A DNA stretch of 64,000 bases from Oikopleura dioica (lineage: Eukaryota > Animalia > Chordata): the NCBI GenBank assembly GCA_907165135.1, contig OU015566.1:4402001-4466000 (forward strand), in the 5' to 3' direction. The notes under the pieces are model-generated. The model did no database searches and was not told where the DNA came from. It worked only from the letters and a program-made list of their open reading frames with translations. Of this stretch, positions 3,208 through 64,000 are shown one piece after another (the stretch's first letter is position 1; every line of letters starts with the position of its first letter). The translations under genes and the position numbers were made by a program.

Positions 3208-3830
3208 TTATCTAAAGCCGGAAAATTCCCTTCCGGAAAATGAATTTTTCTGCTGCTGCTCGAAGCGACCAAATCCACCCGTACCACGTCCAAAGCCGCC
3301 ACCGAAGACACCGCCAGAATTGTTGCCAGAACCAAATGAGCTGCTTTGTTGGTTGCTACTGCCAAAAGCGGATGAGCCGGACGCTGAGCTGCCACCGAAC
3401 GCAGTTGAGCCAAAGGGACTGACGCTGCTGCTACCGAAGGCGCTGCCTCCAAACTCGCCACTTGAACCTAAATAAACTTCGTTTCTGATGTCTATTTAAA
3501 ACTTTCTTTGTTGAAAAAAATCTTTGTTGGTTGCTACTACCAAAAGCGGATGAGCCGAAAGCTGAGCTGCCACCGAATGAAGTTGACCCAAAGGCTCTGA
3601 CGCCGCTGCTACCGAAGGCGCTGCATCCAAATCCGCCACTTGAACCTAAATAAACTTCGTTTCTGGTGTCCATTTAAAACTTTGATACCTCCACCTGAGC
3701 CCGAGAAAGGACGAGTTGCCCCGCTTCTTCCAAAAAAGGACCAGAAGATGATTGTTGATTACTGGAATTCGAGAAGCCGAATTGGTTTGCAGGCGCGTTT
3801 ACAACAAAGCTCGAATTCTTACAAGTTTAA
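3208..3830 (-). CDS. Gly/Ser/Phe-rich FG-repeat low-complexity protein; start codon unresolved
   Basis: Spliced exons (about 3830-3689, 3645-3524, 3468-3208) read NQFGFSNSS...GSSGGFGCSAFGSS...AFGGSSAFGSSAFGSSNQQ...GGVFGGGFGRGTGGFGRF...FR-stop. A MITE lies immediately upstream. Confidence 0.55.
3345..3672. repeat. Tandem duplication of an approximately 180-bp exon plus intron unit
   Basis: 3345-3492 and 3523-3672 are near-identical, including the intron tail cttgaacctaaataaacttcgtttctg. Confidence 0.9.
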
Positions 3831-3838
3831 TTTATGGG

Positions 3839-4508
3839 TATAGTCATCGATTTTGGTCGGGTCTCCAATTTTTAATCTGAGCCCATTTTTAGAATCCCCA
3901 TAAAATTCTGAGCAAAAAGAATGATTATTTTGGCTATCTTAACCCATTTGGCCACAAATTGCGTTTGAAAGTGGCGAAATTTAGTGCATTCTGGCCATTA
4001 GCCGAATATTTTAAAATTTTGACCATTTTAGGGGTTTTGTAAGGGTGCCATATGATACATTTTTTGAAAGCTTATATTCAGGGCATTTATTAAGGACAAC
4101 GTAGGGTAAATTTGGGCCATGCCCGCAGGGCATTTTATCAAAGTGAAAGGTCAAAATTTGGTACCTTGGTTCTTTTAAAAATTTTTCAAAGAAAATCTTA
4201 TGATTACAGTATAAGGCTGTGTCATTTTTAAGATAAGGGTCTATTATTTAAGAAAATAACATAAAATAAATAGGTTTATATAGAAACTTTGGATTTATAA
4301 CGCCTTGAAAAGAGGCTATTTTCGCGTTCTTTGGCCGAGAGCTCAACTTTGAGCGATCCGAAAACCATGATTTCCTTGAAAATATCGTAAAAGGCAGTAA
4401 CAAAAGTGAGATCTAGGATAGATCTTTTATATGACCTATTTAAGAGCCTCCCACATATTCCAAGTCCCGAGTTATAGCCCCTTAGAATCGGCCAAATCGA
4501 CGACTATA
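3839..4508. mobile_element. Non-autonomous DNA transposon (MITE) with about 20-bp TIRs
   Basis: TATAGTCATCGATTTTGGTCG ... GGCCAAATCGACGACTATA. Internal approximately 550 bp homologous to 5550-6120 and to part of 44130-44290. Confidence 0.7.
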
Positions 4509-5414: not shown

Positions 5415-6189
5415 GGGGGGAGGAGGTCGGCGAGAATTTTTTCAGACGTGATCGTAATTTTGCTTATACGCATAGTCAGGATATGAATCTTATATTTTCT
5501 GAATCTACAGATCCTCCCGAATCTTTCGTCAAGTCTCAGAATCGGTTTTTGACCACTTTTTCTGAATCTCCATGAAATTCTGAGCAAAAAACTCCGTATG
5601 AGTATTTTCTCTATCTTAACCCATTTTCGCACAAATTGCAAATGAAAATGGCAATAATTAGTGCATTTTGGCTAAAACGTGGAAATTTTAAAGTTTTTAC
5701 AATTTTTGGTCGTTATGTTAGGGTATCATATGATACCTTTTTGGAAAGCCCACGTTCAGGACATCTATTTGCGATGAGAACGGCGCATTTTGGGCTATGC
5801 CCGCAAGGCAATTCACGGAGTCAAAGGGACGGAAAATGGGTACCTTCGTACTTTAAAATTTTTAACATAGAAAATTTTGACCAATTGAAAAAAGCTCGTG
5901 TCATTTTTAAGATTAGGGTCAAAACTTTACCCTTCAAAAGAATCGAGGGGGCATTCATTGCTCACTTTGGAGGAGAGTCGCCCTGAATATTGGCTATTCT
6001 CGCGATTTTTCGCTGAGACGACAACTTTGAGCGAACCGTACGTGACTTTTCTCTTAGAATTTCGAAAAAAGCTCGTGTAAATCAGAAGATCTAAGATTGA
6101 ACTTTAATTTGAGCCATTACACGCCTTCCCAGCATTGATAGGTTCGGAGGAGAGTCTCGCTGCTTTGGGCCTGTACGGGGACCCTACCC
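5415..6189. mobile_element. TTAA-flanked non-autonomous element with GGG/CCC termini (Kolobok-like)
   Basis: TTAA|GGGGGGAGG ... CCTACCC|TTAA. Interior is a diverged direct copy of 3900-4480. The TIR match is weak. Confidence 0.5.
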
Positions 6190-10080: not shown

Positions 10081-10696
10081 AGAATAGTTCTGCAAAATGC
10101 AGAATTGTTTCGATCAAATATCGCCCTTATTCGATCGAAATAATTCTGCATGCAGAATAGTTCTGCATCCGCCAAAACGGATATAAGCGCAAATAAACAC
10201 CAAAAAGACTCACAAAAAGAAAATTGACCAAAAGATTGGAGTCCTAGCGGTAGAGAAAGACTGCCCCTGCCAACCCAATGAGTTTCCTACCAGAAAATGC
10301 GCGCGTAAGGGCCGAAGGCCTGTCGCGTGCTTAATTCACGAAATGCAGAATACAGTGGTGTGAGGAGTTTCCGCACCCTTTGTGAGTGCTGCGTTCCCCC
10401 ACCCCTAGCCCGCACTTTTTCTACTATTTTCTTCTCGAAGTAGCAAAAGTGAGTGCTGCGTTTCCGCACCCTTTACCCGCACTTTAGGGGTGCGGAAACT
10501 CCTCACACCACTGTAGTTCTATTTATTGCAGAATAGTTCTGGATATAAAGAATAGTTCTGCTTCTCGCAGAATAGTTCTGTATTTTGCAGAATAGTTCTA
10601 CATTTGGAGAATAGTTCTGCACTCGGCAGAATAGTTCTGCGAAACGCAGAATAGTTCCATATTTTACAGAATAGTTCTGCATGCAGAATTGTTTCG
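10081..10696. repeat. Array of a quasi-palindromic AGAATAGTTCT core at 19-20 bp period
   Basis: Eight consecutive cores at 10529-10678 with 8-9 nt variable linkers, further cores at 10081 and about 10155, and one core split by a MITE. Confidence 0.9.
10353..10513. mobile_element. Tc1/mariner-type MITE (161 bp)
   Basis: TA|CAGTGGTGTGAGGAGTTTCCGCACCC ... GGGTGCGGAAACTCCTCACACCACTG|TA: perfect 26-bp TIRs and a TA TSD. Confidence 0.93.
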
Positions 10697-49600: not shown

Positions 49601-50218
49601 ATGGTTCATTGAGAACCAGAAACGTTCTGCAATAAAGTCTTGTTTTCAATTATCATCAGATGTCATTTATCAACGAATAAGGGGGATTGTGAAAATGAAA
49701 TTGGACCCATCGTGCTCCCGTGAAAGTTAAAGGCTATAATTATAGGCTATAATACCGGTAGAGAAGTTCAGAAGTACAATTGGTTTCCAAATTTCCGGAG
49801 TCCAAATTTCCGGACATTTTTAAGATTTTAAGGCATCTTAGTGGGACACTACGAAATCGACCATTGTCCGAATTTCCTGACTTTTCTTCAAAATATTATT
49901 TATGAGCGATCATTTTCTCTAAAATAGGAATCAATTTACGGTTAAATTAACTTCTTTTTGGGCGCAAACTGAGCTTGTTCGCGAGGTTAAAGAAGAAGAG
50001 TAAAACTAAGGGTCATTGTTGTGGACTCGCTTTGCTCATCTCCAAATAAGGAAAGGAGATTCGCCGCACCTGTTCAAAATAACTTTCGCTTGGCCCCGGC
50101 CACTTTTCTGTTCACTCTGCCAGACCGCTTGCTACAAAATGCCGCTAATATTAAATTTTTACAATTCGCAAAACTAGAGTCAATCTTTTCGCATCGCAGC
50201 AAATGCATATCCACAACA

Positions 50219-50553
50219 AATTGGTACCAGGACATAACGAACCCGCGACGGAGGACACCTCCAAGAGAAGAAACTGGCACCAAACAACAAATTGGTACCA
50301 GGAATATACGAACCGCGCCGCACAAGACCATCCATAAGAAAAACTGGCACCAAACAAGAAATTGGTACCAGGACACGAAGAACCCGCGACGGAGGACACC
50401 TCCAAGAGAATTAACTGGCACCAAACAAGAAATTGGTTCCAGGACTCAACGACCCTGCGCTGGAGGAAACTGCAAAAAGAGAAAAACTGGCACCAAACAA
50501 CGAAATTGGTTTCAGGATGCTATCTGTGGATCAAACAAGAAATTGATTCCAGA
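50219..50553 (+). repeat. Tandem array of six PBS-containing units (about 70-73 bp period)
   Basis: PBS copies at 50222, 50293, 50363, 50434, 50507 and 50544. Conserved block AAACTGGCACCAAACAAGAAATTGGTACCAGGA plus a variable approximately 38-bp segment. Confidence 0.92.
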
Positions 50554-50711
50554 TAAAAAGAAAAAAAACCTCCTGTAAGTAATTCCCCGCAATGGTTACA
50601 GAAAATTTGCACTGTCGTCATTATTTTGGGAACTTTTTTGGATTTATTCGCTAGTGGATTTGCTCACTGGTGGATTTCCTTTATTTATTTTACCGTTGTG
50701 GATCGCATGCC

Positions 50712-50872
50712 TTTGGACGAATTTCTAGCGAGACGAATTTCCAATCAAGCTTTTGGACGAATTCTTGCTAGACGAATTCCAATAAATTTTGCCTTTGGAC
50801 GAATATTCAGCCGAACGAAATTCCAAGCAAGCATTTGGACGAATTTCAGCTGAACGAATTTCCAATATAAAT
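50712..50872. repeat. Four approximately 40-bp units (TTTGGACGAATT...GACGAATTTCCAA) inside the TRIM
   Basis: Paired GACGAATT motifs in each unit. A third small array (tgggtatcattcc x3) lies at 51066-51180. Confidence 0.8.
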
Positions 50873-53043
50873 TGCTACAGCCGCCACAAAAAAAACCGAT
50901 TACCCGACGATTAACTGGGGGGAAGGGAGTATCGCAAATTATATAAAATTTATCTCTTCTCGTCAAAAAGAAAATAAGTTAACCGCCGTCAGCGCATTGG
51001 AAATCGGACTTCAATTCTGCTCTTGCAACCGCATAAATGATACAGACTGGATCCCGCATGGAAAACTGGGTATCATTCCGCTTCTGCACTGCTCGAAAAT
51101 CTGCAAAAAATTAATTGGGTATCATTCCCACAGCACAGCTACAGCAACGCACAACCAATTGGGTTTTATTCCCACTGCATTTACAGCTATTTCTTCTGGT
51201 ACGCCGCAAACTACCGTGCCCGCATAGAAGATCAAGTCGCGCAAATAAAAATAAGCTTTATGAAATTAATCTGCGATCAGAAGAGAATATTTGAACACTG
51301 GTGGAATCTGCAAACTTTGCGCGAAAATTCTACTCATCACATGCTGCACCCGAATCTGGGGGATGTTGTGGACTCGCTTTGCTCATCTCCAAATAAGGAA
51401 AGGAGATTCGCCGCACCTGTTCAAAATAACTTTCGCTTGGCTCCGGCCACTTTTCTGTTCACTCTGCCAGACCGCTTGCTACAAAATGCCGCTAATATTA
51501 AATTTTTACAATTCGCAAAACTAGAGTCAATCTTTTCGCATCGCAGCAAATGCATATCCACAACATCATTAAGTGGTTTTTCTTTCATAATCTCTTTGTA
51601 TTGAGCCTGTACCAACGCTTTTTTAAAATTTTTGGTGGGACATAAAATTTTTTCCGGTGACCCAAATTTCCGGACATTTTTATGGAAACCAGGGGACGAA
51701 ATTTGTCCGGAAATTAGGAAACCAACTGTACTAGTTCTCAATCAAAATCAGATTTCTTGAAAAATCAGATTTCTTGAAAAAATTCTTGAAAATCTCACTT
51801 CTAAGATAAGCTGCGAGCCCGTGAAGTTCGGCTCCGCGCTGCTCGCCCAGGTCCCTTAAACTCACTAATACGAGGCCCTAACGCACGCATTTTCTGGTGA
51901 AGAATTTATTGAATTAGCGGGGCCCAACTCTCACTCTTGTTCAGAACTGTTTCCTAGGTCATGGTTTGGTCAGATGATGGCCAATTGGTTACGGCCGGGC
52001 GGCGCAATTCAGTACTCCCCTTATTTTTTATTACAAATTACCTATCACACTGAGTTATGAGAAAGCAAAAGTCCCACTTATATTTCTCTTTTGCCATTTT
52101 ACAGCTTCGTGCTTTTCCCTCTTTTTGCAAAGTGCGAATGAATTTCATTGACACTAGACTCAAGGAAGAGTTTATTGAAATTTATTTTACCTGACAAATT
52201 ATTGATTTTTCTTTTTTATTTCGATTATGGACGTTCATGAAAATCTTATATTGGACCAACAAAGGACGGAGCTTTATGATTTCATTTCATGACCGATATT
52301 TCGATGAACTGCCAATAAAAGCGGTTTGCATAAGCGCAAATTTTCTCAATAAATTCGAACTTGTGTTTTGAACAATCGTTGCGCAAGATAGTAATGATTT
52401 TTATACCAGGTCACGGGAACATAACGCCGGAACGCATAAAAAAATTTCTCATTCAAAAGCTCCTTATAAGGGCTTTCTATTTGACTTATAATACGAGATT
52501 CCATCCTGGTAAAAGGAAGACTTGTCTTCCATGATTCCATTAGTCAACACGGTCGCGAGCGACCGGGCGGTAGGGCCGCAGGGCCAGCGCAAGGCTGACA
52601 CCTAGACGCGAAAACATCCCGCGCTGCGTTTCGACAAGTTCAGTCGTCGAAATCGGACAACGCGGTAAGTCACTTCTCGAGAGATTACGAGAGAACGTGA
52701 GTTTAGAAGTTAGGACCCGGGCCCACGTACATTTAGAACGTTACGTGCGAAACGCAACGTTAGAACTAACATTTAGAATTTAGATTTCCGCCCAACTCGA
52801 CTTGCAGCAGAAGACAACAACGAAGAGAATTCCACTGTTCATTCTGCCCCGAGAATATAAATAAACCTAACTTAAATCGAATTAGTCCCACGTTTCTTGT
52901 GGTGACTGAAGCGCTTTTAAGCGGGCTTACGTTTTCCGAAGTACATCAGGAAATCGCGTATTCTCCACATTTAGCTCTCAAGAGAGTGACATTTTGAGTC
53001 CTCTTTGAGTAAAACATTTAGCGACGTGCCCATTTAAAGCACA

Positions 53044-56000
53044 ATGTCGAACAACCCATCTAGCATGATCTACGCTAAGGCTAATGCCCGAAGCTATGAA
53101 CCGTACCGCAACCTCAGCGACTCCCAGAAGCCGCCGAAGTTGTGTACAGATATTCCCCCGGCGATGGCGAAAATCATTTATGAGGCTTGGCTGGCGCATT
53201 TCGACAGCTACGTCTCAAAACGAATTTTAGCCAGAAGCCCTAAAAACCCGTACGCTCAGTTTAGCACTGACTTGCCATGCCTCTGGGATACGCCCTCGGG
53301 CAGGGATATGCCGAATTGGACGGGCTCGTGTGGCATCCCGAGCACCTTGATCGAATTCCGTAACTGGAAAACAACCTTCCCGAAAAGGTACAAGGGAAAA
53401 GGTATGATCGAATTCATCGGTGTCGATGACGACCTCCAGGACGGGGTTCTCGTTTATGAAGGACCCATCGAATTGGAAGGGAGACCAGTAGGACAAGATC
53501 AGATAAACGAAGTGTTCATCAACTTCTTCTTCCCAGGATTGTCCAACTTTGATAACTGGAATGAAGAAGCGAACCTTAAGTTCGCAAGGGAAGCCGTGCG
53601 AAGAGCGGGTGAAACCTTCATCACGCAATGCCGCCCTGACCACAAGAATGCGGTCAGACGAGGACAACTGGCGTCAGTTAGAGCCTACGTCGATAAGCTC
53701 ATCGAAGACCTCGAAGGGCCGAGCAAGAAGCCAGAGTTTTTCAGATGGTTTGCTTTGCTCCGCACGTTGGCGAACAAGGAATACGCCGCGTTCACCGTCA
53801 AAAGCAAGATCGACCTGGCTCGCCAAGTGATGATGAACAACTTGGGGGATTATTCCCGCGAAGCGGTCGCCATCGGCCACAGCTTCGAAAGGGCTGAATT
53901 TAACGAGGCTGAGGGATGGACTCCATTAATGGAACTTACAGCTTTCTTAGCCGGAATCCTTTCCAATTCGGAGAAGGATCTCGTGGCTATCTTGGAGTCT
54001 TTGGCTACCAGGGTCGACAAGGACTACGAGTCCATCGATCTGAAAACGGTCCTCGAGAACCAGCAGTTCATTTTGGGGAAATTCGAAAGGAACGCAAGAG
54101 ACGATTTGCTCAACATCTGCCCTGAGAAATGGGAGCTGAGCTACGTCTGCGACCCAGAGAATCCAATGCGCGCCTACCAGGACGTGGTGGACCAGGAAGC
54201 CAAGGCTGTCAAGGAAGCCGAGAAGAAGGAAAAGCCCAAGTTCAACAAGTGGGCTTCTGAACGCAAGGACAAGAAGAGATTTCCGAAGTACCAAGCGAAC
54301 GCCGTCAACTCGCGAAACGATTTAATCGTCGACGCGAACACTGGCAAGGTATTCGCGGAAGTAAAGGAGCTCAAGATGTCCCAACAGGAGCTCGGCAGAG
54401 TGGATCAGGACAAGATCCGGTGGATGTCCAAGAACAGATTCAGCCGCCAGGTCAAAGCCAAGGTAACTATGGCCAAGAAAGATCTGAAATCGAGATCCTG
54501 GGGCCCGAAACAACTTCCAGGTAAGAAGTTCAAGGCGGTCGCTTTGGAAGAGGTCGAACGCGAGCTCGATTACATCCAACGGGCGATCAGAAATGAAGAA
54601 GGAGGCTGGCACCTGGCCCAAGAAGACGACGACTACGAGAAGACTGACACCGACGGAGAAGAAGTATCAGCTACGTCTGGAGAAGCAACTTCATCGTCGG
54701 AAGAAGGTTTGTCCGATAGAAACATAACGGAGAATAACCGCATTTTTAGACTCATAAGAAGTATCCGCTCGGCAAAAGAAGAACATGCAGTCTTCAAGAA
54801 ATACGATAAGAGAAACGTTTCTTTAAAATTCGATTACATATCTGTTGTAACAAATGATTCGGCAAATAAAATTAAAACTAGGAATACTTACACCCTTGTG
54901 TTTGATACAGGAGCTAATACAACACTAATAAACTGCAGGTTTCTAAAGCAACTCGAAGAAAACAACTGTGCGGTACGCAGAGATTCAGGCATACGAAAAG
55001 GCTCCACCGCGGGCGGCGGAAAGCTTAAACTTATGCCTTTCGCAGTTTCCTTTTCATTGTGTTTAGGAGCATTGGAAATTAAGGCAATAGATGCGGCCGT
55101 CCACGAAGGGAAAGACGACAATTGGATTCTTCTAGGAGTTAGAGATTGGCAACCGAACGGCGTTGAATTTAAAAATATCGACGGCGAAACTAGGATAGTA
55201 GTAAACGATCAGCCGCTTGAGGATTATTGGACATTTGTGAGACACGTGGAGGTCGAAGATCAAGAATGGTCGGAGTTGAGCAGAGAGTTCAATAAAATTA
55301 TTACGGAATCTTTAGTCGCAGAAGTGAGTATCAGATCTGAAATTGACCCAAACGACGAATTAGCATCGATATTTTTTGATTTGAAGCCTACAGACAAAAT
55401 GAACCCAGACGGCATGCGTGAATTTTGGAGGAAAATCGAACAGATCCACGAAGATAACAAAAAAATTAACACTGTTGACGAAGTTGTCATAGATGAGTTC
55501 GGCGAAGTCTTGGACTTGAGTGACCCGGAGGACAAAAGATTTTTTAGAAGAATAAAGAGACTACTGTTGAAATATTTTGTCGTGTTTTCTAAAACTCAGG
55601 GCGTAGTACCTGATGAGCAATTTATTGTGCACGGCGAGATCAAGGGAAACCCTACAGGTAAGTTTGCGGACAAGTCTTTCGAAAGATGGTCTCCGGAAGT
55701 GCAGGAGCAGGTCATCAACAAGCTGAACAACGAACTCGCTGAAGGAATCTTGAAGCCTTTAGACCCAAAGATTCAACCCAAGAATTTTATGAGAATATTC
55801 CCAGTAAGCAAGAAACACTCACCGGGAATGACAGTAGAAGAGAAGATGGCGAATATTAGATTAGTCTCAGACTGTTCAGCAGGTATCAATCAGAATACGA
55901 CCTTTGCCAATCATGAGATGGACTCGATCAGAGACGCTATTCAAAAGATGGCGAGATTCACGGAGACGGGACTCATTGGGATGGCGGATCTGTCATCAAT

Positions 56001-58779
56001 GTTCCATTCGTTCAGAATGTCGGATGATCTCATACCGAACTTCTGCGTCAGACACCCTCTGATCGGAAACACGGCATATGTAAGACTTCCGATGGGCTGG
56101 GTATGCTCCCCAAGCATCAGCAGAGATTTCCTCGCTAGAATTTATTACCCGTGTAATGATTTTATGTGCAGATATGTAGACGACTTGACGTTCTCAGCGA
56201 ATTCAAGAGAAGAATTTTTACAGAATTTAGAGAAAATTCTGATAATCACGCACAAAAATAACCTTAGATTCAACGGAAAAAAGATGAAACTGCTCGGAAA
56301 GAGCATGAAAATCCTGGGCAAGAAAATCTGCAACGGTAAAATTTTAGTTGACGAACACAATCTCCAGAAGATTTTGGACGAAGATCATGAATCAGTTAAG
56401 ACGGTCAGGCAGCTTAGAGCGATTCTAGGAAGAGTGGCCTTTGTGTCTGATAGCATTCCGAGCAGAGTGGAAATCACTAAAAACTTAGCAGAGGCAGTCG
56501 GCGGTAAGAATTCGGCGGAGAATGTTGAATGGACGGAAAAGCTAATCACTGATTTCCGTAACTTGAAAACCGTACTGTCGAGAAACTTGGTTGAATTATT
56601 CCCAGTTGTAGAAGGCATGGAGACGATTTTGGTGGTAGACAGCTCCTACTGCGCCACGGGTGGTTTTCTAATGCAGCTCGATAACGAAGGAAATAGAAGA
56701 ATGATCAGACTCTTCTCAAGAAAGAGAACAGATCTCTCGAACAAGTTTGCTATGTCAAGCTGCCTGTTGGAATTGACAGGTTTAGTTGCCGCGGTAAAAT
56801 TTTTCAAGATAGAAATGCAAATTGCGAAGGTGACTACTAGAATTTATACGGACAGTCTATCAGTCGAGAAGCTGTTCAAGCGATTGATGAAAGGAGAAAG
56901 CTTAAGCGATGATCTAAGGATCAACTGTCATTTACTAGAACTGATCAACCATGACGTTGACGTAATATACATGTCCGACAAAAGCGAGTATATCGTTCTT
57001 GCAGATTTTATTTCGAGAAAACCTTCGATCGCTACAACATGCGAAGGCAAGTGCAAAGTATGCGAAGCGGCCGACGCAATCATCATCAAAACGGAAAATT
57101 TGCAATTTCAACAGACAAATGGAGACAACGAGGAAAAACAGAAGGACTTACAGCTGGCAGAGGTCATGATCCCTACAAAAAGTCTATACGAATATGAAGC
57201 GATTCAGGACATCAAATGCAACGAGCTTTGGTGGGAGGAACAGCGTAGGGCATTTAGATCAACAAACTTCACTCCGTTCAGAGCGGAGATCTTGAGTTTT
57301 AAAGTCGGCAGGACTAACCCGGCCGTTTTAAGAGATCATCCAGAGCTTAAATCATTATCTTTAGCTGAATTTTTGGCAAACGATGCTTTAATCGCTTGCA
57401 TACAGAGGAGAGACAGAACGCTCAGAGCGGTGTTTCAAGCGAAAGAAGACGAGATCTTGCCCGGCGCCAAAAACAGGCGGGGCGAGACGGCCAGATGGAA
57501 GATGGAAGTGATGAATGGGAAAGTGGTCACGGTTAAAAACTTCGGAGTTCGCCAGATTTTTGTCCCCGTCATCCCAGAAAGGCTCACCAACTGGATTGCT
57601 CAAAAAATTCATGACGATAAAGGCTGCGCTTCACACACAGCCCTCATGAACGAAGCAAAATGCATCGTTCACGCTCCCAAAATCAGAGACGCCCTGAAAG
57701 CAATTATATCGCGTTGTAGGAAGTGTTCCTTCCTCAGAAACGTGCCGAACACGGTGTGCAACTTGAAGGAGTACAACGATTTCAACCCTGAGTTCATTGG
57801 ACACATCTGCTCTTGGGATCAGATGACTAGGACGAATGAGTTGGACGGAAATAAGCCCGTCCGGTTTTGGGTGATAACCGACCACTTGACAGCCTTTACA
57901 AGGCTGATTCCGGTAGAAGGAGCGTCCAACGCGAAGAATAACCGCTTGGCCCTGATCAGGGCAGTAGCTTCTTTGAAAGGCGATAGAGCGGAAATGACTA
58001 CAGTTGTTGCGGATGGCGCGAGAATCAATTCATCGCTAGTAGAAGACCCGGAATTGCTAGGTTTTAATATCAAGGTTTTGATCACAACAAAAAGCTCAAG
58101 AAGCAAAAATAACTTAGCAATTTTAGACACTCGATTAGGAAAATTGACAAAATTCTTAGTACTAGCTTTAAACGAAATGAAAGACGCTTGGGATTTAGCG
58201 GAAAATGTTAATTATAATCACAACAAATTGAAGGCTTGCCACGGATATTCCCCAATGGAACTTTTCTCGGGCAAGTGCCAAACGACCGGTAAAAAGCTGA
58301 ATATAGACTGGGAGAAAATTAGATCGAGGATTAAAAGAGGTCGAGAAATGTCCAGAAAGGCGAATGATAAGTTGGCTAGGAAAGGTTTCATCCGTGAAGC
58401 TATGGAACTGATCCCGTTTGACGAGTCTGACGGATGTTATGGCGGCCTGACAAGATCGCCGATCAAACTAGGAGACATTATAATTCTGTCGGAGGCTTTT
58501 AATAAAAACAACTCACGACCCTTTTGGAAGGTAGTGGAATGCGATCAAATCCCTTTGGGCATCGATTTCGAAAATAAACTCGTGAGCACATTGAAGATGG
58601 ATTTAAAGCGTAATCATAAAAATTCCTTTAAGATTTGGTCATTTTTCGCGATTAAAATGGTGATCGACGGGAGAGGGAATCCAAGCATTGAAGAAATTCA
58701 AGAGCTAGAAAGCCCGATCCCAGACAAGTTTAACATGTGCTTTACTGAAGTCCCCAAATCTAGATTTAACCAAAATTAG
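53044..58779 (+). CDS. gag-pol: Ty3/gypsy Gag-Pol polyprotein (1911 aa, single uninterrupted ORF)
   Basis: Protease LVFDTGA, RT ADLSSMFHSF / RLPMGW / YVDD, RNase H VDSS...LLEL...YTDS...ADFISR, and integrase HDDKGCASH...CRKC, WDQ, VADG. Domain order PR-RT-RH-IN. The Gag region lacks a CCHC knuckle. Confidence 0.95.
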   Translation: MSNNPSSMIYAKANARSYEPYRNLSDSQKPPKLCTDIPPAMAKIIYEAWLAHFDSYVSKRILARSPKNPYAQFSTDLPCLWDTPSGRDMPNWTGSCGIPSTLIEFRNWKTTFPKRYKGKGMIEFIGVDDDLQDGVLVYEGPIELEGRPVGQDQINEVFINFFFPGLSNFDNWNEEANLKFAREAVRRAGETFITQCRPDHKNAVRRGQLASVRAYVDKLIEDLEGPSKKPEFFRWFALLRTLANKEYAAFTVKSKIDLARQVMMNNLGDYSREAVAIGHSFERAEFNEAEGWTPLMELTAFLAGILSNSEKDLVAILESLATRVDKDYESIDLKTVLENQQFILGKFERNARDDLLNICPEKWELSYVCDPENPMRAYQDVVDQEAKAVKEAEKKEKPKFNKWASERKDKKRFPKYQANAVNSRNDLIVDANTGKVFAEVKELKMSQQELGRVDQDKIRWMSKNRFSRQVKAKVTMAKKDLKSRSWGPKQLPGKKFKAVALEEVERELDYIQRAIRNEEGGWHLAQEDDDYEKTDTDGEEVSATSGEATSSSEEGLSDRNITENNRIFRLIRSIRSAKEEHAVFKKYDKRNVSLKFDYISVVTNDSANKIKTRNTYTLVFDTGANTTLINCRFLKQLEENNCAVRRDSGIRKGSTAGGGKLKLMPFAVSFSLCLGALEIKAIDAAVHEGKDDNWILLGVRDWQPNGVEFKNIDGETRIVVNDQPLEDYWTFVRHVEVEDQEWSELSREFNKIITESLVAEVSIRSEIDPNDELASIFFDLKPTDKMNPDGMREFWRKIEQIHEDNKKINTVDEVVIDEFGEVLDLSDPEDKRFFRRIKRLLLKYFVVFSKTQGVVPDEQFIVHGEIKGNPTGKFADKSFERWSPEVQEQVINKLNNELAEGILKPLDPKIQPKNFMRIFPVSKKHSPGMTVEEKMANIRLVSDCSAGINQNTTFANHEMDSIRDAIQKMARFTETGLIGMADLSSMFHSFRMSDDLIPNFCVRHPLIGNTAYVRLPMGWVCSPSISRDFLARIYYPCNDFMCRYVDDLTFSANSREEFLQNLEKILIITHKNNLRFNGKKMKLLGKSMKILGKKICNGKILVDEHNLQKILDEDHESVKTVRQLRAILGRVAFVSDSIPSRVEITKNLAEAVGGKNSAENVEWTEKLITDFRNLKTVLSRNLVELFPVVEGMETILVVDSSYCATGGFLMQLDNEGNRRMIRLFSRKRTDLSNKFAMSSCLLELTGLVAAVKFFKIEMQIAKVTTRIYTDSLSVEKLFKRLMKGESLSDDLRINCHLLELINHDVDVIYMSDKSEYIVLADFISRKPSIATTCEGKCKVCEAADAIIIKTENLQFQQTNGDNEEKQKDLQLAEVMIPTKSLYEYEAIQDIKCNELWWEEQRRAFRSTNFTPFRAEILSFKVGRTNPAVLRDHPELKSLSLAEFLANDALIACIQRRDRTLRAVFQAKEDEILPGAKNRRGETARWKMEVMNGKVVTVKNFGVRQIFVPVIPERLTNWIAQKIHDDKGCASHTALMNEAKCIVHAPKIRDALKAIISRCRKCSFLRNVPNTVCNLKEYNDFNPEFIGHICSWDQMTRTNELDGNKPVRFWVITDHLTAFTRLIPVEGASNAKNNRLALIRAVASLKGDRAEMTTVVADGARINSSLVEDPELLGFNIKVLITTKSSRSKNNLAILDTRLGKLTKFLVLALNEMKDAWDLAENVNYNHNKLKACHGYSPMELFSGKCQTTGKKLNIDWEKIRSRIKRGREMSRKANDKLARKGFIREAMELIPFDESDGCYGGLTRSPIKLGDIIILSEAFNKNNSRPFWKVVECDQIPLGIDFENKLVSTLKMDLKRNHKNSFKIWSFFAIKMVIDGRGNPSIEEIQELESPIPDKFNMCFTEVPKSRFNQN

Positions 58780-58993: not shown

Positions 58994-60457
58994 CTAGCCA
59001 ACAAAACAAAGTGACCCCTGCTGCACGAGCAGAGGGAACTTGACAACAACAGAATTGATCAGAGCGTCGAGCTTGACGTTGAGTTCTTCATGATCGCAGA
59101 GCAGACCGGGCGTTCGATGAAGATAAGCACCACGAACGTAGCGATAAAGTGATGCCAACAGCAGAGTGAGATAGCTGGAGAGGAATCGGACGAAAAGCTT
59201 TGAGGATATCTGCACGAGACGTTGATACTGAGGCTCAGTGTCGACAATTTGGACCTAGGTGAAAGATTGTGGAAATTAAGAAGGAATAACTTGAATCTTA
59301 CCACGGGCGAAGCACCAAGTCTAATGAAGAATGAAGGGCATAAGCTAGAGGAGTTGAGGAATCGACCAAAATGCTGCAGGAAAGTCAGATGCCGATGATA
59401 AAAGGGAAGTTCAGGATGATTCAATTCGAGAGTCGACCCCGAAATCCGGTATTGGGCAAATTGCTCAGGAAAGCCGCGTTGCAAGGATTGACGCCCGATG
59501 ATTTCCCCTCTGGAACGACTAACTAAAGCATTAAAAGTTAGAAGAAATAAACAAATGATGAAAATTTGGAGATTTTAATAAAAAATAGATAATATTAGTA
59601 GGTTAGTACCTTACTCCCGTCACTGACAAAATAAATCAGATCCAGCGGGTATTCTGGCAAATAGAAGCCATTGGCACGTAGATGAAGCAGCTGGTAGACG
59701 CCGAATAGATTTCCTCCAACAACAGAACCAGTCAAGACATTAACACGTGTCAATGTCTCATCAGAGACTTCATACTTGACAGGAGAAGGCTTGAAAGGAT
59801 GAGTAGGAGGTGGCCTTGGAGGACTGGGCGCATCGTTCCGCTCTGGCACAGCAGCGGGAGTCCCATCTTCGGTGATTGGCTCGTCGATTAAAGTTTCACT
59901 CATGACGTGAGTCTGAGGTTCGTCTGCAGCAGGAATCGGAGACATGGAAGAGGGCTTAAGCGAATTTAACGAAAACTCTAGCGTTGAAAAAGGTAAAACC
60001 CGCTGAGACGCTGGAAGACTGTTGTTCGCTGCAGCAAGAGCGCATAAGTAACGGTTCTGCATAGTGACGATCTGATTAGCTAACCCGAGATGCGGGGCCA
60101 TAAGTTGACTCGAGTTCAGGGTTGAATTGGTGATAGCAACGGAAGATATGGACGAGCGCTGAGTCGCAAGCAGGGGCGTCGGAGGATTGGCGATTTCGTG
60201 ACCTCTGATTACCTCTAAAACGAGAATCAGTAACCCAGCACTAAGAATTCGGTTTAAATAGATCACTAGATTTAGTCATAAAATTATTAAAACTTTTTCT
60301 GGAAACCTATTATGGGCGCAAACGATTGAGGCAGCTCGGAAACTGGATTCTGCGCCAAATGACTGCTTATTTCTAGGTCTGAAGGATCCTCTACCACTTC
60401 CGAAGGCATCAGAGAGCGCCCTAATTCTCGAACAAGTTCAGATATATAATCGCTCAT
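58994..60457 (-). CDS. Antisense 4-exon gene downstream of pol, 410 aa, unknown function
   Basis: Exons 60457-60307, 60214-59615, 59522-59302 and 59254-58994 joined by AT-rich GT-AG introns of 92, 92 and 47 nt. Phases 1, 1 and 0 give one 1233-nt ORF with a central Pro/Ser-rich linker. Confidence 0.8.
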
Positions 60458-60599
60458 CTCTAAAAATTTACAAAATAATTTTTATGAAAGAAGCCAGAGT
60501 ACTGAGCGAAATTCCGGCGAGAAACGGAGTCACCAAATCAGCTTGCGCGCGAGGAGGCTGACCCGCGGGCTTAAATTTCGCGCCTGACGAATATCGAAA

Positions 60600-60900
60600 A
60601 CATAGAGGACCCCGGGCCGATTTTTCTCGGCGGATCGACGAAAGGTCATTAACCAATGAGACGCAAACTAACCACGCGGGCCAACCGGTTTTAAAATAAT
60701 TAGAAACTGACAGAAACAGAGAAAAACGAAAGAAGTCGGAATCGCGCTCGATCCTTTAAAGAAATCCTGAAATTCAAATACAAACTTAGCCCACTGTTCA
60801 TGCATAAGCTAACTTTATCCCCATTTAGAACTGTATAGTGAGTTAAACTCACCATTTCGCTAAATTTAAATCTTATTTGTAAAATTCTTTCTAGTCTAGA
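60600..60900. promoter_or_regulatory. Putative bidirectional promoter between divergent accessory genes
   Basis: GC-rich stretch with CCAAT (aaccaatgag, about 60652) between ATG 60457 (-) and ATG 60910 (+). Confidence 0.35.
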
Positions 60901-60909
60901 AATCTTTGA

Positions 60910-61683
60910 ATGGCCATGGATCGGATCGTGGGTAGCATGATCTCTCGATTTTCTGAGAATCAAGCCTTTCGAAACCCTGTCCCGCTAAGCGTGAGAAAGG
61001 AGCTAACCAAACGTTTGATCTGCAAGAACTACGACGATAGCCTGCTGAGCAGCTTGATCAGCGATAAATATGTCGCTGGAGTTGCCATGAGCCTCGAAAA
61101 TTGGAGACGAGTAGCGGATAGATGGGCAGCCATTCAACCTGCTAAACGAATGAAAATTAGCCGCACTCAAGTTGAAACGAAAGCTTCGATCTTCAGAAGA
61201 ATTAACGAGCTGCTTGTCCACCACGAACTCCGACCAGAGGTCGACCTGTTGGTCCTGGTCGAATCCGACTCGAGCTACGAATTCATCTGTCAAGAGTTAA
61301 CGCTGGAGGTGGAGTGGAACTTCTCACTGGAGCGAATTGGGACGCTTTCTCGGGTAGGAAAGGTCTGCTTCAATCTGTTGGCTCCAAAAGCGGGCCCGCT
61401 TGACCTGGTCTTTGGACAGAAAATCGCGATTTTTGGCCCGACAGCCGAACCAACCTTGAACATCCAGCACCTCGCCAACACGATCTGGCCGGGCTACAAT
61501 TTCGCCATGATTAACAAGGCTGAAATGAAGAACTTCTTGCGGAATGCTCACGACAGAGGAGAGGACATCTCCAACCTCTTTCACCAGTGCTGCGACCTAC
61601 ATGCCTTTTGTCAAACTTTGGAGCTAGAGATGCAAGATGCTGAAATGCTCGCTTTAGACGAGGAAACACCTGAGGTAATTTAA
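60910..61683 (+). CDS. Sense-strand ORF (257 aa), apparently intronless, unknown function
   Basis: Uninterrupted ORF with globular protein-like composition and no recognised domain. A possible donor (GAG|GTAATT) lies just before the stop. Confidence 0.65.
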   Translation: MAMDRIVGSMISRFSENQAFRNPVPLSVRKELTKRLICKNYDDSLLSSLISDKYVAGVAMSLENWRRVADRWAAIQPAKRMKISRTQVETKASIFRRINELLVHHELRPEVDLLVLVESDSSYEFICQELTLEVEWNFSLERIGTLSRVGKVCFNLLAPKAGPLDLVFGQKIAIFGPTAEPTLNIQHLANTIWPGYNFAMINKAEMKNFLRNAHDRGEDISNLFHQCCDLHAFCQTLELEMQDAEMLALDEETPEVI

Positions 61684-61876
61684 AAGACCGCTTGGTTTTA
61701 AATAATATCAAATAAGACTTAAAGGTTGGGTTATGAGCCAGATTTAAACTTTATTTTCTGTTATAAAGACGGTTACAGTTGCGTTTTCAATTTTGAGCTT
61801 ATTAAAAGAAAATGTAGAACAGATAGGAGCAAAGAAAGCAGAGGCACTCACGTTGACCCCGGCCAATCTTCTGTCG

Positions 61877-64000
61877 CCTAGAAAAGGGCGGGATCTTCGA
61901 GCTCGAGCTCGGTAGGGGCAGCAGGCTCGCGGTCGAGGAATTCCATGGCGTATTCAAACATAGTTTGATCGCGGGGATCGTCGAAGACGTAGTCGATGGC
62001 TCCACGGTGCTCGCGCGCGACATGAGCCATGAACTGGTCGTGCTGGCGATTGAGGCGGCCCTAGAAACGATAGATTTAGGTAGAATAAGTTGAGAGTGTT
62101 TAAAACGAAATTCAGAGTCCCGAGGCTGATTCGAGCTTCACCGAAGGCGGACGCAACGGTAGAAACTCAAGCCACGAAGCCGCAGACAACGCTGTTCTAC
62201 TAAATTGGATAAACTCACCACTCCGACGTGCGACAAGATCCGCGGAGCACTTCCGGTAGGGGCACCATGCGTACTGCGCAGCCGGTAGTTGGTCTCCTCC
62301 ATGACCCATGAGCCAAGATAAAGCTCACCCAATCCTGGAAGCATCACGGGAATACGGCCTGAAAAGAGAGTTTAAGGAACAAGTAAATAATGTAGTAATA
62401 AAACTTACAAGGGGGAGTGTACGGGTTTCGGCGGCCGGGATTTCGTACGCGCATCTCTAGGGCGTTGGGCGTGACGTTGAGTCCAACGTTCCACTCGTCG
62501 TCGACACGTTCTTGGCGGTCACGCTCGTAATCGCGCAAAACGCGGAAGTCGACCTGTAAGGAAATTTAGTTCTAGTTCGCTTTATTTTAAATTCTTTCAA
62601 TTTAGCTTTTGAAATTCGAATGAATCCTAGACTAATCTACCTTACTTACGTAAAACTGTTGAATCGACTGGAGCCCAGTCGTGAAGAGCGAGAGGGGAGG
62701 GCATTTCAGGAGAAGATACTTCACCTGAAGTGCGTTGAAAAACGCAAATTCCAAAGGATTGCCCATCATCATCTTGTAGCGCGAAGTGGCTAGGCTGAGC
62801 GCACGGGAAACCAAAGTCGCGAAGGCCAATTCACCAACGTTGTCTTTGGGCCGGAAGAAAACTAAAATTCAAATTTAGTATGAGAAAGTCACCGGAGAAA
62901 ACGCCAGCCCGCGACAACGATTTAGAAGTGGACATGATGGTGTGGTCCACGTTGGAAAGCGAAGAAAGTTTCTGGACTATGCTCGAGATCGCCGGCGAGT
63001 TCGACCTGATCAGGGCTGCCAAAGTGGAAAACTTGAAGAGCCCGATTTTCAAGAAGCCAGCCACGTTCCCGTTAGAAGGCTTTTCTGACTCGGCTGAGAT
63101 GTTGTTTTTGAGCTAGCAGAATTCTACTGGCCCAAGCTCGAAAACGTGGATACCGGCGGATACGTCCGAACCCAAGAAGATCTAACGGTGTGCCAAGAAA
63201 TCTGCTCGCTCACGGGGCCGCTAATGAACATTAAAACGCCGGGCGAATTTCCGATCGCTTCGATCAGCCCCGAACTCTGTGGGTCCGAATCGAAACGCCC
63301 GAGCCTGACGACATTAAACGACTGGCAAAATGGATCAGCAGCATCTGGGATCAGATCGAAAAGGCCGAAAGACGAGAGCTAGCTGCTTTGGTTCGCCTCA
63401 AAGAAAGCGGCGAAGCAGGTAAAACTTATTAAATTAAAAGCCGATTGATGATTTAATTTTCGGTTATTCTTTTCTCGTGATTAAAAAAGAAATTATAGCT
63501 TTAAATCAATTAAAGTAGACAGAATAACTTACGTCCAAGATCGCGACGCCGCCGATTTGGCTCGGGATGGCCTGGATATTCCGGACTATCTTCGAATTCG
63601 CCCTCAAGTCCGACGGAACGCACCAGCTTCCACAACAGGAATCGAGTTCGCTTGGAACGGCGATTCACGCCATCTGGGGAACCAGTAGCTACGGCGGGAC
63701 CGTCGACCATGTTTTCTCCAGTGCCGTCAATCGATCGCTGATGCTAGAAATATAAAATTAAATTTGGAACCGTTTATTTGGATTTAAGCTCAAATTGTGC
63801 CCGAAATTGTTTTTCTTTCTGATTTCTATTAATGAACAATTTTGCGTTTTAAAAGCCAAACTAACCTGGAACCATTTATAAGAAATGATCACGGCGAGCA
63901 GGAACGGATCGGAGACAAAGTGACAGTCCAGAAAGCCGTACTCGTCGTGAAGGTCGCCGACGCACTGATGACCTGGGACGTTGTCAAGCCACTCAACAAT
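61877..64000 (-). CDS. Second antisense multi-exon gene, unknown function; 5' end beyond the window
   Basis: Phase-compatible GT-AG exons >64000-63866, 63743-63533, 62861-62650, 62553-62409, 62358-62142 and about 62061-61877, bounded by AT-rich introns. Optional exons at 63344-63214 and 63112-62893. The frame of the last exon is ambiguous. Confidence 0.65.
62880..63687 (+). CDS. Possible sense-strand gene nested in or overlapping the second antisense gene
   Basis: Protein-like segments MRKSPEKTPARDNDLEVDMMVWSTLESEESFWTMLE..., AEFYWPKLENVDTGGYVR..., EPDDIKRLAKWISSIWDQIEKAERRELAALVRLKESGEA|gtaaaa and DRITYVQDRD...NQ-stop. Two frame changes are needed. Confidence 0.35.

Follow-up and report, generated by a model that had tools for sequence, protein, structure and literature searches.

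A tandem leader array of primer-binding-site copies in a small non-coding LTR retrotransposon of Oikopleura dioica

A tandem array built around copies of a primer-binding site (PBS) lies in a 64-kb window of Oikopleura dioica DNA (the whole 64,000-nt stretch analysed here), where it forms the leader of a mobile element. By its structure, this is a complete, non-autonomous, non-coding, TRIM-like LTR retrotransposon with a PBS-bearing leader array, an identification of which we are highly confident. The insertion is recent, because its two LTRs are identical at 201 of 202 positions. Every full unit of the array repeats a PBS-like motif together with an inverted copy of it, and the inverted copy of one unit is predicted to pair with the PBS-like motif of the next. 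Judging structure and stem function together, we consider it probable that the array is best explained as the 5′ leader of this recent non-coding LTR element; taken separately, the functional reading of the stems appears to us evenly balanced.

Structure and surroundings of the element

The original prediction placed the array behind a single LTR. Direct-repeat detection and comparison of the copies instead revealed two 202-nt LTRs in the same orientation (50017-50218 and 51364-51565) that differ by one mismatch, with the array inside a complete small element, right after its 5′ LTR (Table 1). Both LTRs carry the TG...CA ends of a 9-nt terminal inverted repeat (TGTTGTGGA...TCCACAACA). The pair is bounded by a 4-bp target-site duplication (TSD), and a polypurine tract (PPT) lies beside the 3′ LTR; these are structural features expected of an LTR retrotransposon. 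The element measures 1,549 bp, with an interior of 1,145 bp. Within the 64-kb window, we found neither an empty (uninterrupted) paralogue of its flanks nor any further element copy or solo LTR. In the flanks themselves (49773-49822 and 51651-51732), a CCAAATTTCCGGA motif recurs in short direct and inverted orientation, among others as 27-nt arms with 93% complementarity, and the insertion site may have been a small palindromic repeat of the host.

A Pfam search of the internal ORFs returned no match at E ≤ 0.09, indicating that coding capacity for gag and pol is absent; the element is without gag, pol or env. One 185-aa plus-strand frame (50021-50578) stays open across the 5′ LTR and the whole array, and as units 1 and 2 together make 141 nt, or 47 codons, a basic peptide motif repeats in frame within it. 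This frame has no ATG and no Pfam match and its sequence is poor in T, on which grounds the array was ruled out as a coding repeat; the open frame is probably a by-product of the T-poor composition. ARAGORN found no tRNA gene in the 64-kb window. Rfam gave nothing at gathering thresholds over the same window, and near the element it listed just two chance-level bacterial sRNA rows (E 5-7). On these two negatives, we rejected a known RNA or a tRNA-derived element as the identity of the element or its array.

Three repeat blocks make up most of the interior (Table 1), and the remaining interior shows no unusual RNA structure (z +0.8). One of the three copies of the TGGGTaTcATTCC motif follows a ACAACCAATTGG stretch that resembles the loop and PBS start of the leader array.

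Table 1. Features of the element, its leader array and the neighbouring polyprotein ORF, in window coordinates.
Feature	Position	Strand	Support or remark
Left TSD, TCAT	50013-50016	+	same 4 nt at both element ends
5′ LTR, 202 nt, termini TGTTGTGGA...TCCACAACA	50017-50218	+	201/202 identical to 3′ LTR
Leader tandem array	50213-50570	+	Tandem Repeats Finder, MAFFT
Array unit u1	50213-50283	+	
PBS1, putative, 11-mer, 3 nt past LTR end, predicted unstructured	50222-50232	+	fold -0.8 kcal/mol, z +1.3; opening 3.2 kcal/mol
GGAGG-ACA-CCTCC mini-hairpin, unit 1	50250-50262	+	motif search, fold
Junction hairpin 1: CTGGCACCAA / loop ACAACAAA / TTGGTACCAG; 4+5 bp, 1x1 C.A internal loop	50274-50301	+	-11.2 kcal/mol, z -4.4
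Array unit u2	50284-50353	+	
Internal perfect PBS copy 2, 3′ arm of hairpin 1	50293-50303	+	
Junction hairpin 2	50344-50371	+	-11.2 kcal/mol, z -4.2
Array unit u3	50354-50424	+	
Internal perfect PBS copy 3, 3′ arm of hairpin 2	50363-50373	+	
GGAGG-ACA-CCTCC mini-hairpin, unit 3	50391-50403	+	motif search, fold
Junction hairpin 3; one change in PBS-like arm, at internal-loop position	50415-50442	+	-11.2 kcal/mol, z -3.9
Array unit u4	50425-50497	+	
Junction hairpin 4; second PBS-like-arm change gives G-U pair	50487-50515	+	-7.8 kcal/mol, z -2.2
Array unit u5, truncated	50498-50534	+	
Junction hairpin 5, most diverged unit; strongest stem, 13 bp	50521-50555	+	-13.1 kcal/mol, z -5.3
Array unit u6, remnant	50535-50570	+	
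Second internal tandem block, ~40-nt unit, ~4 copies	50705-50867	+	Tandem Repeats Finder
TGGGTaTcATTCC motif, three spaced copies (51067, 51116, 51160)	51067-51172	+	read from sequence
PPT GGGGGA, short (6 nt), abuts 3′ LTR	51358-51363	+	
3′ LTR, 202 nt	51364-51565	+	direct-repeat match to 5′ LTR
Right TSD, TCAT	51566-51569	+	matches left TCAT
Probable Tor-type polyprotein ORF, 1,911 aa, unbroken	53044-58779	+	Pfam: protease, RT, RNase H

A probable Tor-type polyprotein ORF begins 1.5 kb downstream of the small element. The proteins most similar to it come from O. dioica and share 52-59% identity with it. For integrase there is a weak hint of an H2C2 zinc finger below the Pfam cut-off, with no integrase core seen by Pfam, and the C-terminal 631 aa have no sequence match in the PDB. 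No LTR pair or inverted repeat surrounds this ORF in the window. In a comparison confined to the surroundings of the ORF, the small element had no LTR, termini or PBS in common with it, and a tie between the two was rejected for this reason.

Other ORFs of the window, searched singly, belong to the host. One is a scramblase exon that matches a protein from the Okinawa assembly of O. dioica at 95% identity; a POT transporter and a GT2 glycosyltransferase are encoded by others. Together with the relatives of the polyprotein, these identify the window as O. dioica DNA, not human. Positions 59000-64000 resemble the polyprotein region in their GC content (44-50%) and A-rich plus strand, the stretch from 41 to 50 kb having 35-36% GC; ORFs in these last 5 kb (e.g. 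59595-60266 on the minus strand and 60910-61683 on the plus strand) gave no Pfam match. Further repeats are scattered through the window. They comprise a 178-nt tandem duplication (3344-3683, 91% identity) in apparent minus-strand coding sequence, a 112-nt dispersed pair (3921-4032 and 5598-5709, 77% identity), and short tandem arrays with TTTCGACT-based units at 3-164 and with 20-nt or 59-nt units at 10514-10682. The 112-nt pair was considered as a copy of the element and rejected as an unrelated dispersed repeat, and the 178-nt duplication is likewise unrelated.

The primer-binding site and the tandem array

The PBS-like sequence closest to the LTR, the 11-mer TGGTACCAGGA (PBS1), begins with TGG 3 nt after the terminal CA of the LTR, which is where a PBS is expected. 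Its complementarity to tRNA-Leu(UAA) had been proposed with reference to the vertebrate tRNA, and published mammalian sequences bear this out. Human tRF-3009a derives from tRNA-Leu-TAA, and both its sequence and a complementary probe have been printed (PMC6049499). Read as its reverse complement, the 11-mer matches the final 11 nt of this fragment exactly, and it is the same as the first 11 nt of the probe (cf. PMC6049499); the 18-mer of tRF-3009a is listed identically for rat and dog. Complementarity to the human tRNA ends at 11 nt, and nucleotides 12-18 vary among units 1-3. We treat PBS1 as a putative PBS on the strength of an 11-of-11 match to the tRNA-Leu(UAA) 3′ end as printed for mammals, the tRNA compared being mammalian and not that of Oikopleura. 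It is very unlikely that an 11-mer matching a tRNA 3′ end would occupy the exact PBS position by chance. The second motif of the units was also tried as a PBS for another tRNA; strings from the literature gave only primer-type chance matches, and this candidate was rejected.

Tandem Repeats Finder reports a 71-nt period with 4.3 copies and 80% matches over 50213-50517, and in a MAFFT alignment four full units (u1-u4) are followed by a truncated u5 and then by a remnant u6 that ends at about 50570. The array and the motifs described for it in the original prediction are present, with the span now refined to 50213-50570, so that its start falls 6 nt inside the LTR. From 5′ to 3′, a unit consists of an LTR-end-like ACAAsAAAT, a PBS-like motif, a variable middle of ~38 nt and an inverted PBS copy. 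The second unit exactly duplicates the last 6 nt of the LTR and the 3-nt spacer, and u3-u6 have ACAAGA or ACAACGA upstream of the PBS in place of the CA-ending LTR terminus. All three perfect copies of the 11-mer (starting at 50222, 50293 and 50363) lie in the array and are its sole exact occurrences in the 64-kb window; degenerate forms follow at 50434 (1 mismatch), 50507 (2 mismatches) and 50544. Allowing up to two mismatches, the window holds 15 sites versus 6.6 expected, a count reached by 0 of 100 shuffles. The second motif, TGGCACCA, recurs in units 1-4 (50275, 50345, 50416 and 50488), and a GGAGG-ACA-CCTCC hairpin, GGAGGACACCTCC, in units 1 and 3 (50250 and 50391).

As had been noted in the original prediction, the 11-mer decays outward from the LTR, and it does so monotonically (0, 0, 0, 1, 2 and 4 mismatches). 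This gradient, together with the three perfect copies, could mean that units are added singly at the LTR-proximal end by strand-transfer slippage, yielding a multi-PBS leader that draws off primer tRNA or 3′ tRNA fragments (tRFs) as a decoy or sponge; in human cells, 3′ tRFs of tRNA-Leu-TAA do occur and are loaded into Argonaute. We nonetheless regard such an origin and function as very unlikely. Whole-unit similarity is not polar, as u1 is closest to u3 (91.5% identity) rather than to u2 (76%); u2 and u4 are 70% identical, and full units other than the u1-u3 pair share 70-78%. Diverged and truncated edge units are, moreover, common in any tandem array. A clean duplication of two units was ruled out as well, u2 and u4 being just 70% alike.

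The age of the units also argues against their addition one by one at this site, since divergence among them greatly exceeds that between the LTRs. Because the units differ by 24-30% and the LTRs by 0.5%, the array predates the insertion and was inherited, not grown at the locus. The array has thus passed through replication cycles as an array.

Pairing across the unit junctions

The second motif had been presented as a feature in its own right. Folding of the leader shows it to be an inverted copy of the PBS: CTGGCACCAA is, apart from one mismatch, the inverse of the PBS-like TTGGTACCAG. At each of five junctions, the inverted copy of unit n is predicted to pair with the PBS of unit n+1 across an 8-9-nt loop made of the LTR-end-like ACAAsAAA. 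All five fold individually (z -2.2 to -5.3, Table 1), and hairpin 1 also appears in the centroid of the 421-nt leader fold (z -3.9). The LTR-PBS1 junction, in contrast, is predicted to be unstructured (-0.8 kcal/mol, z +1.3), and local folding gave no upstream partner for PBS1 beyond 3 bp. Opening the 11-mer is calculated to cost 3.2 kcal/mol at PBS1 versus 7.8-11.0 kcal/mol at the internal copies, and on these models only the LTR-proximal PBS looks open for priming.

This predicted sequestration, which makes the internal copies 5-8 kcal/mol costlier to open than PBS1, argues against an efficient tRNA or tRF sponge. So does the nature of the outward changes in the PBS, which preserve pairing as expected of a stem and not of a decaying PBS: one lies at the position of the 1x1 internal loop, another creates a G-U pair, and in hairpin 5 a C-G pair becomes U-A through changes on both sides. 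Dimerisation through the palindrome, another suggestion of the original prediction, is energetically possible (homodimer -13.8 kcal/mol), but the palindrome is already set by the tRNA 3′ end, and this potential is a by-product of it.

A different use of the internal copies would make every unit a working "LTR-end plus PBS" module, with tRNA priming at PBS2 and PBS3 as well and providing redundancy; the LTR-end-like ACAACA/AAT before each PBS would let the cDNA end still be recognised for integration. The exact repetition in u2 of the LTR's last 6 nt and spacer fits this proposal, as do the three perfect 11-mers, and an 11-bp primer duplex (-19.2 kcal/mol) would outweigh the cost of opening a stem. 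The stems would still disfavour internal priming, however, and u3-u6 lack the CA-ending terminus. Use of an internal PBS would furthermore produce cDNA with at least one array unit after the 3′ LTR, whereas the 3′ LTR of the present copy ends cleanly at the canonical terminus with no array units after it. Working modules of this kind seem to us decidedly unlikely.

We examined conservation along the units as a further indication of constraint on the stems. In the five stems, 95.6% of cells are paired, compared with 13-60% when the partner columns are slid, and the changes amount to one compensatory pair and two wobble changes. Between full units, the loop and PBS segment is 90-100% identical and the inverted copy 80-93%, whereas the 38-nt middle is 50-68% identical, with the exception of u1-u3 (92%). 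The arms are more conserved than the middles in 5 of 6 unit pairs (Fisher p 5e-5 to 0.05). The 11-mer of u2 is perfect even though the middle of this unit is 57% identical to that of u1, an outcome with a chance of ~0.002 at the rate of the middle. Stem constraint is judged here from units of one array in one copy, which are not independent of each other, and with n=5 the covariation falls short of significance, the observed score being reached in 101 of 500 shuffles.

The same data bear on the possibility that the array is a functionless leader minisatellite, in which the U5 end, PBS and inverted PBS were duplicated by slippage, unequal exchange or template switching by reverse transcriptase (RT), and in which conservation of the arms reflects homogenisation seeded at palindromic motifs. 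Tandem repeats are common in the window and elsewhere in the element, and the high similarity of u1 and u3 suggests conversion-like events. The insignificant covariation also speaks for neutrality. Furthermore, TGGTACCA is itself palindromic, and any duplication of such a PBS therefore brings some hairpin potential free. Against neutrality stand the strong difference in conservation between arms and middles and the perfect 11-mer of u2 beside its diverged middle. Direct repeats are usually lost fast during reverse transcription, yet at least four diverged units survive here. We consider a neutral origin somewhat unlikely.

Leaders of insect LTR elements such as gypsy, ZAM, Idefix and roo carry tandem repeats downstream of a single PBS, which are read as protein-binding sites. 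By analogy, the present array could offer binding sites for proteins at the DNA level and serve as an enhancer or insulator within the 5′ untranslated region. It occupies the same position just past the 5′ LTR and PBS as in the insect gypsy-type elements, and each unit has two conserved short motifs. These motifs are mutually complementary, however, and their changes keep the pairing, which points to a single-stranded structure and not to two duplex sites; nor is a binding factor known. This makes protein-binding sites, in our estimate, very improbable.

The explanation we favour remains that of a leader whose repeated stem-loops accompany a single accessible PBS. The element would be copied in trans by proteins of an autonomous Ty3/gypsy-type (Tor) element, with tRNA-Leu(UAA) priming at PBS1. 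Internal PBS copies would persist mainly as arms of the repeated leader stem-loop and less as extra primer sites. The stem-loop may serve in cis, as an RNA module, in packaging, in Gag binding or in the choice of primer site, although a role in packaging or primer choice is something that we purely infer. The array itself would arise and turn over by template switching or slippage between direct repeats, and the present copy would have inherited it from its source.

A stronger form of this explanation holds that selection maintains the stem-loop of inverted PBS, LTR-end loop and PBS as a cis module of a parasitic retroelement without genes, and that this is an undescribed leader organisation. 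We judge it unlikely. If it were true, the module could be a multiplied packaging or Gag-binding signal with which the element out-competes its autonomous Tor helper. Alternatively, it could be a gate that hides spare primer sites until a capsid chaperone opens them; every unit would then provide an alternative "LTR end + PBS" boundary.

Significance and comparison with known systems

The element belongs to a known kind of mobile element, of which it is an unusual variant with the PBS and its inverted copy repeated in each unit. With it, the very compact Oikopleura genome gains a small non-autonomous LTR element; descriptions of its LTR-retrotransposon content have so far dealt mainly with Tor. 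Should other copies confirm the arrangement, it would show that a PBS and LTR end can become the unit of a leader minisatellite, and that such an array can last many replication cycles as paired stems. This would bear on how non-autonomous LTR elements compete for helper proteins, on the choice of primer sites and on the origin of tandem repeats borne by retroelements. At present, with one copy and a mammalian tRNA for comparison, it is a well-documented curiosity and not a discovery. A limited literature search found nothing relevant on multi-PBS or PBS-bearing leader repeats, and no description of a unit combining an LTR end, a PBS and an inverted PBS.

In self-priming of the Tf1/sushi type, the very 5′ end of the transcript folds onto a single PBS and serves as the primer. 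The present leader is similar in that an element-encoded complement of the PBS folds back onto it. Here, however, the partner lies 8 nt upstream of each internal PBS and not at the transcript start, the LTR-proximal PBS is partnerless, and the PBS matches a tRNA 3′ end. A Tf1-type self-priming element was accordingly rejected as an identification, PBS1 having no upstream partner beyond 3 bp. With gypsy, ZAM, Idefix and roo, the element shares a short tandem array between the PBS and the first gene or interior, and it differs from them in that its repeat unit includes the PBS and LTR end and its conserved parts pair with one another.

Seen as a target site of tRF-3009a (PMC6049499), the 11-mer agrees with the first 11 nt of the complementary probe; the match ends at 11 nt and the tRNA compared is mammalian. 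Among LTR elements, the Tor family, of Ty3/gypsy type and with retrovirus-like members, comprises those described from the Oikopleura genome (PMC4402516). Tor elements share the host genus with the small element, and the probable Tor-type polyprotein ORF lies 1.5 kb downstream of it, while the small element differs from them in having no gag, pol or env. It is plausible that Tor elements are the source of its proteins.

The closest resemblance is to small non-autonomous LTR families, of which 115 have been surveyed in sugar beet and show the same hallmarks as the present element (PMC13570524). Like TRIMs, it has short LTRs (202 nt) with TG...CA ends, a TSD, a putative PBS and a PPT, is non-coding and depends on the proteins of another element. 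Its LTRs fit the TRIM size range (about 100-250 bp), and at 1,549 bp the whole is at or above the classical limit of ~1-1.5 kb, for which reason we call it TRIM-like. Unlike TRIMs, it has a 1,145-bp interior that is longer than classical and built largely of three repeat blocks, and its PBS belongs to a tandem unit in which an inverted PBS copy is present too.
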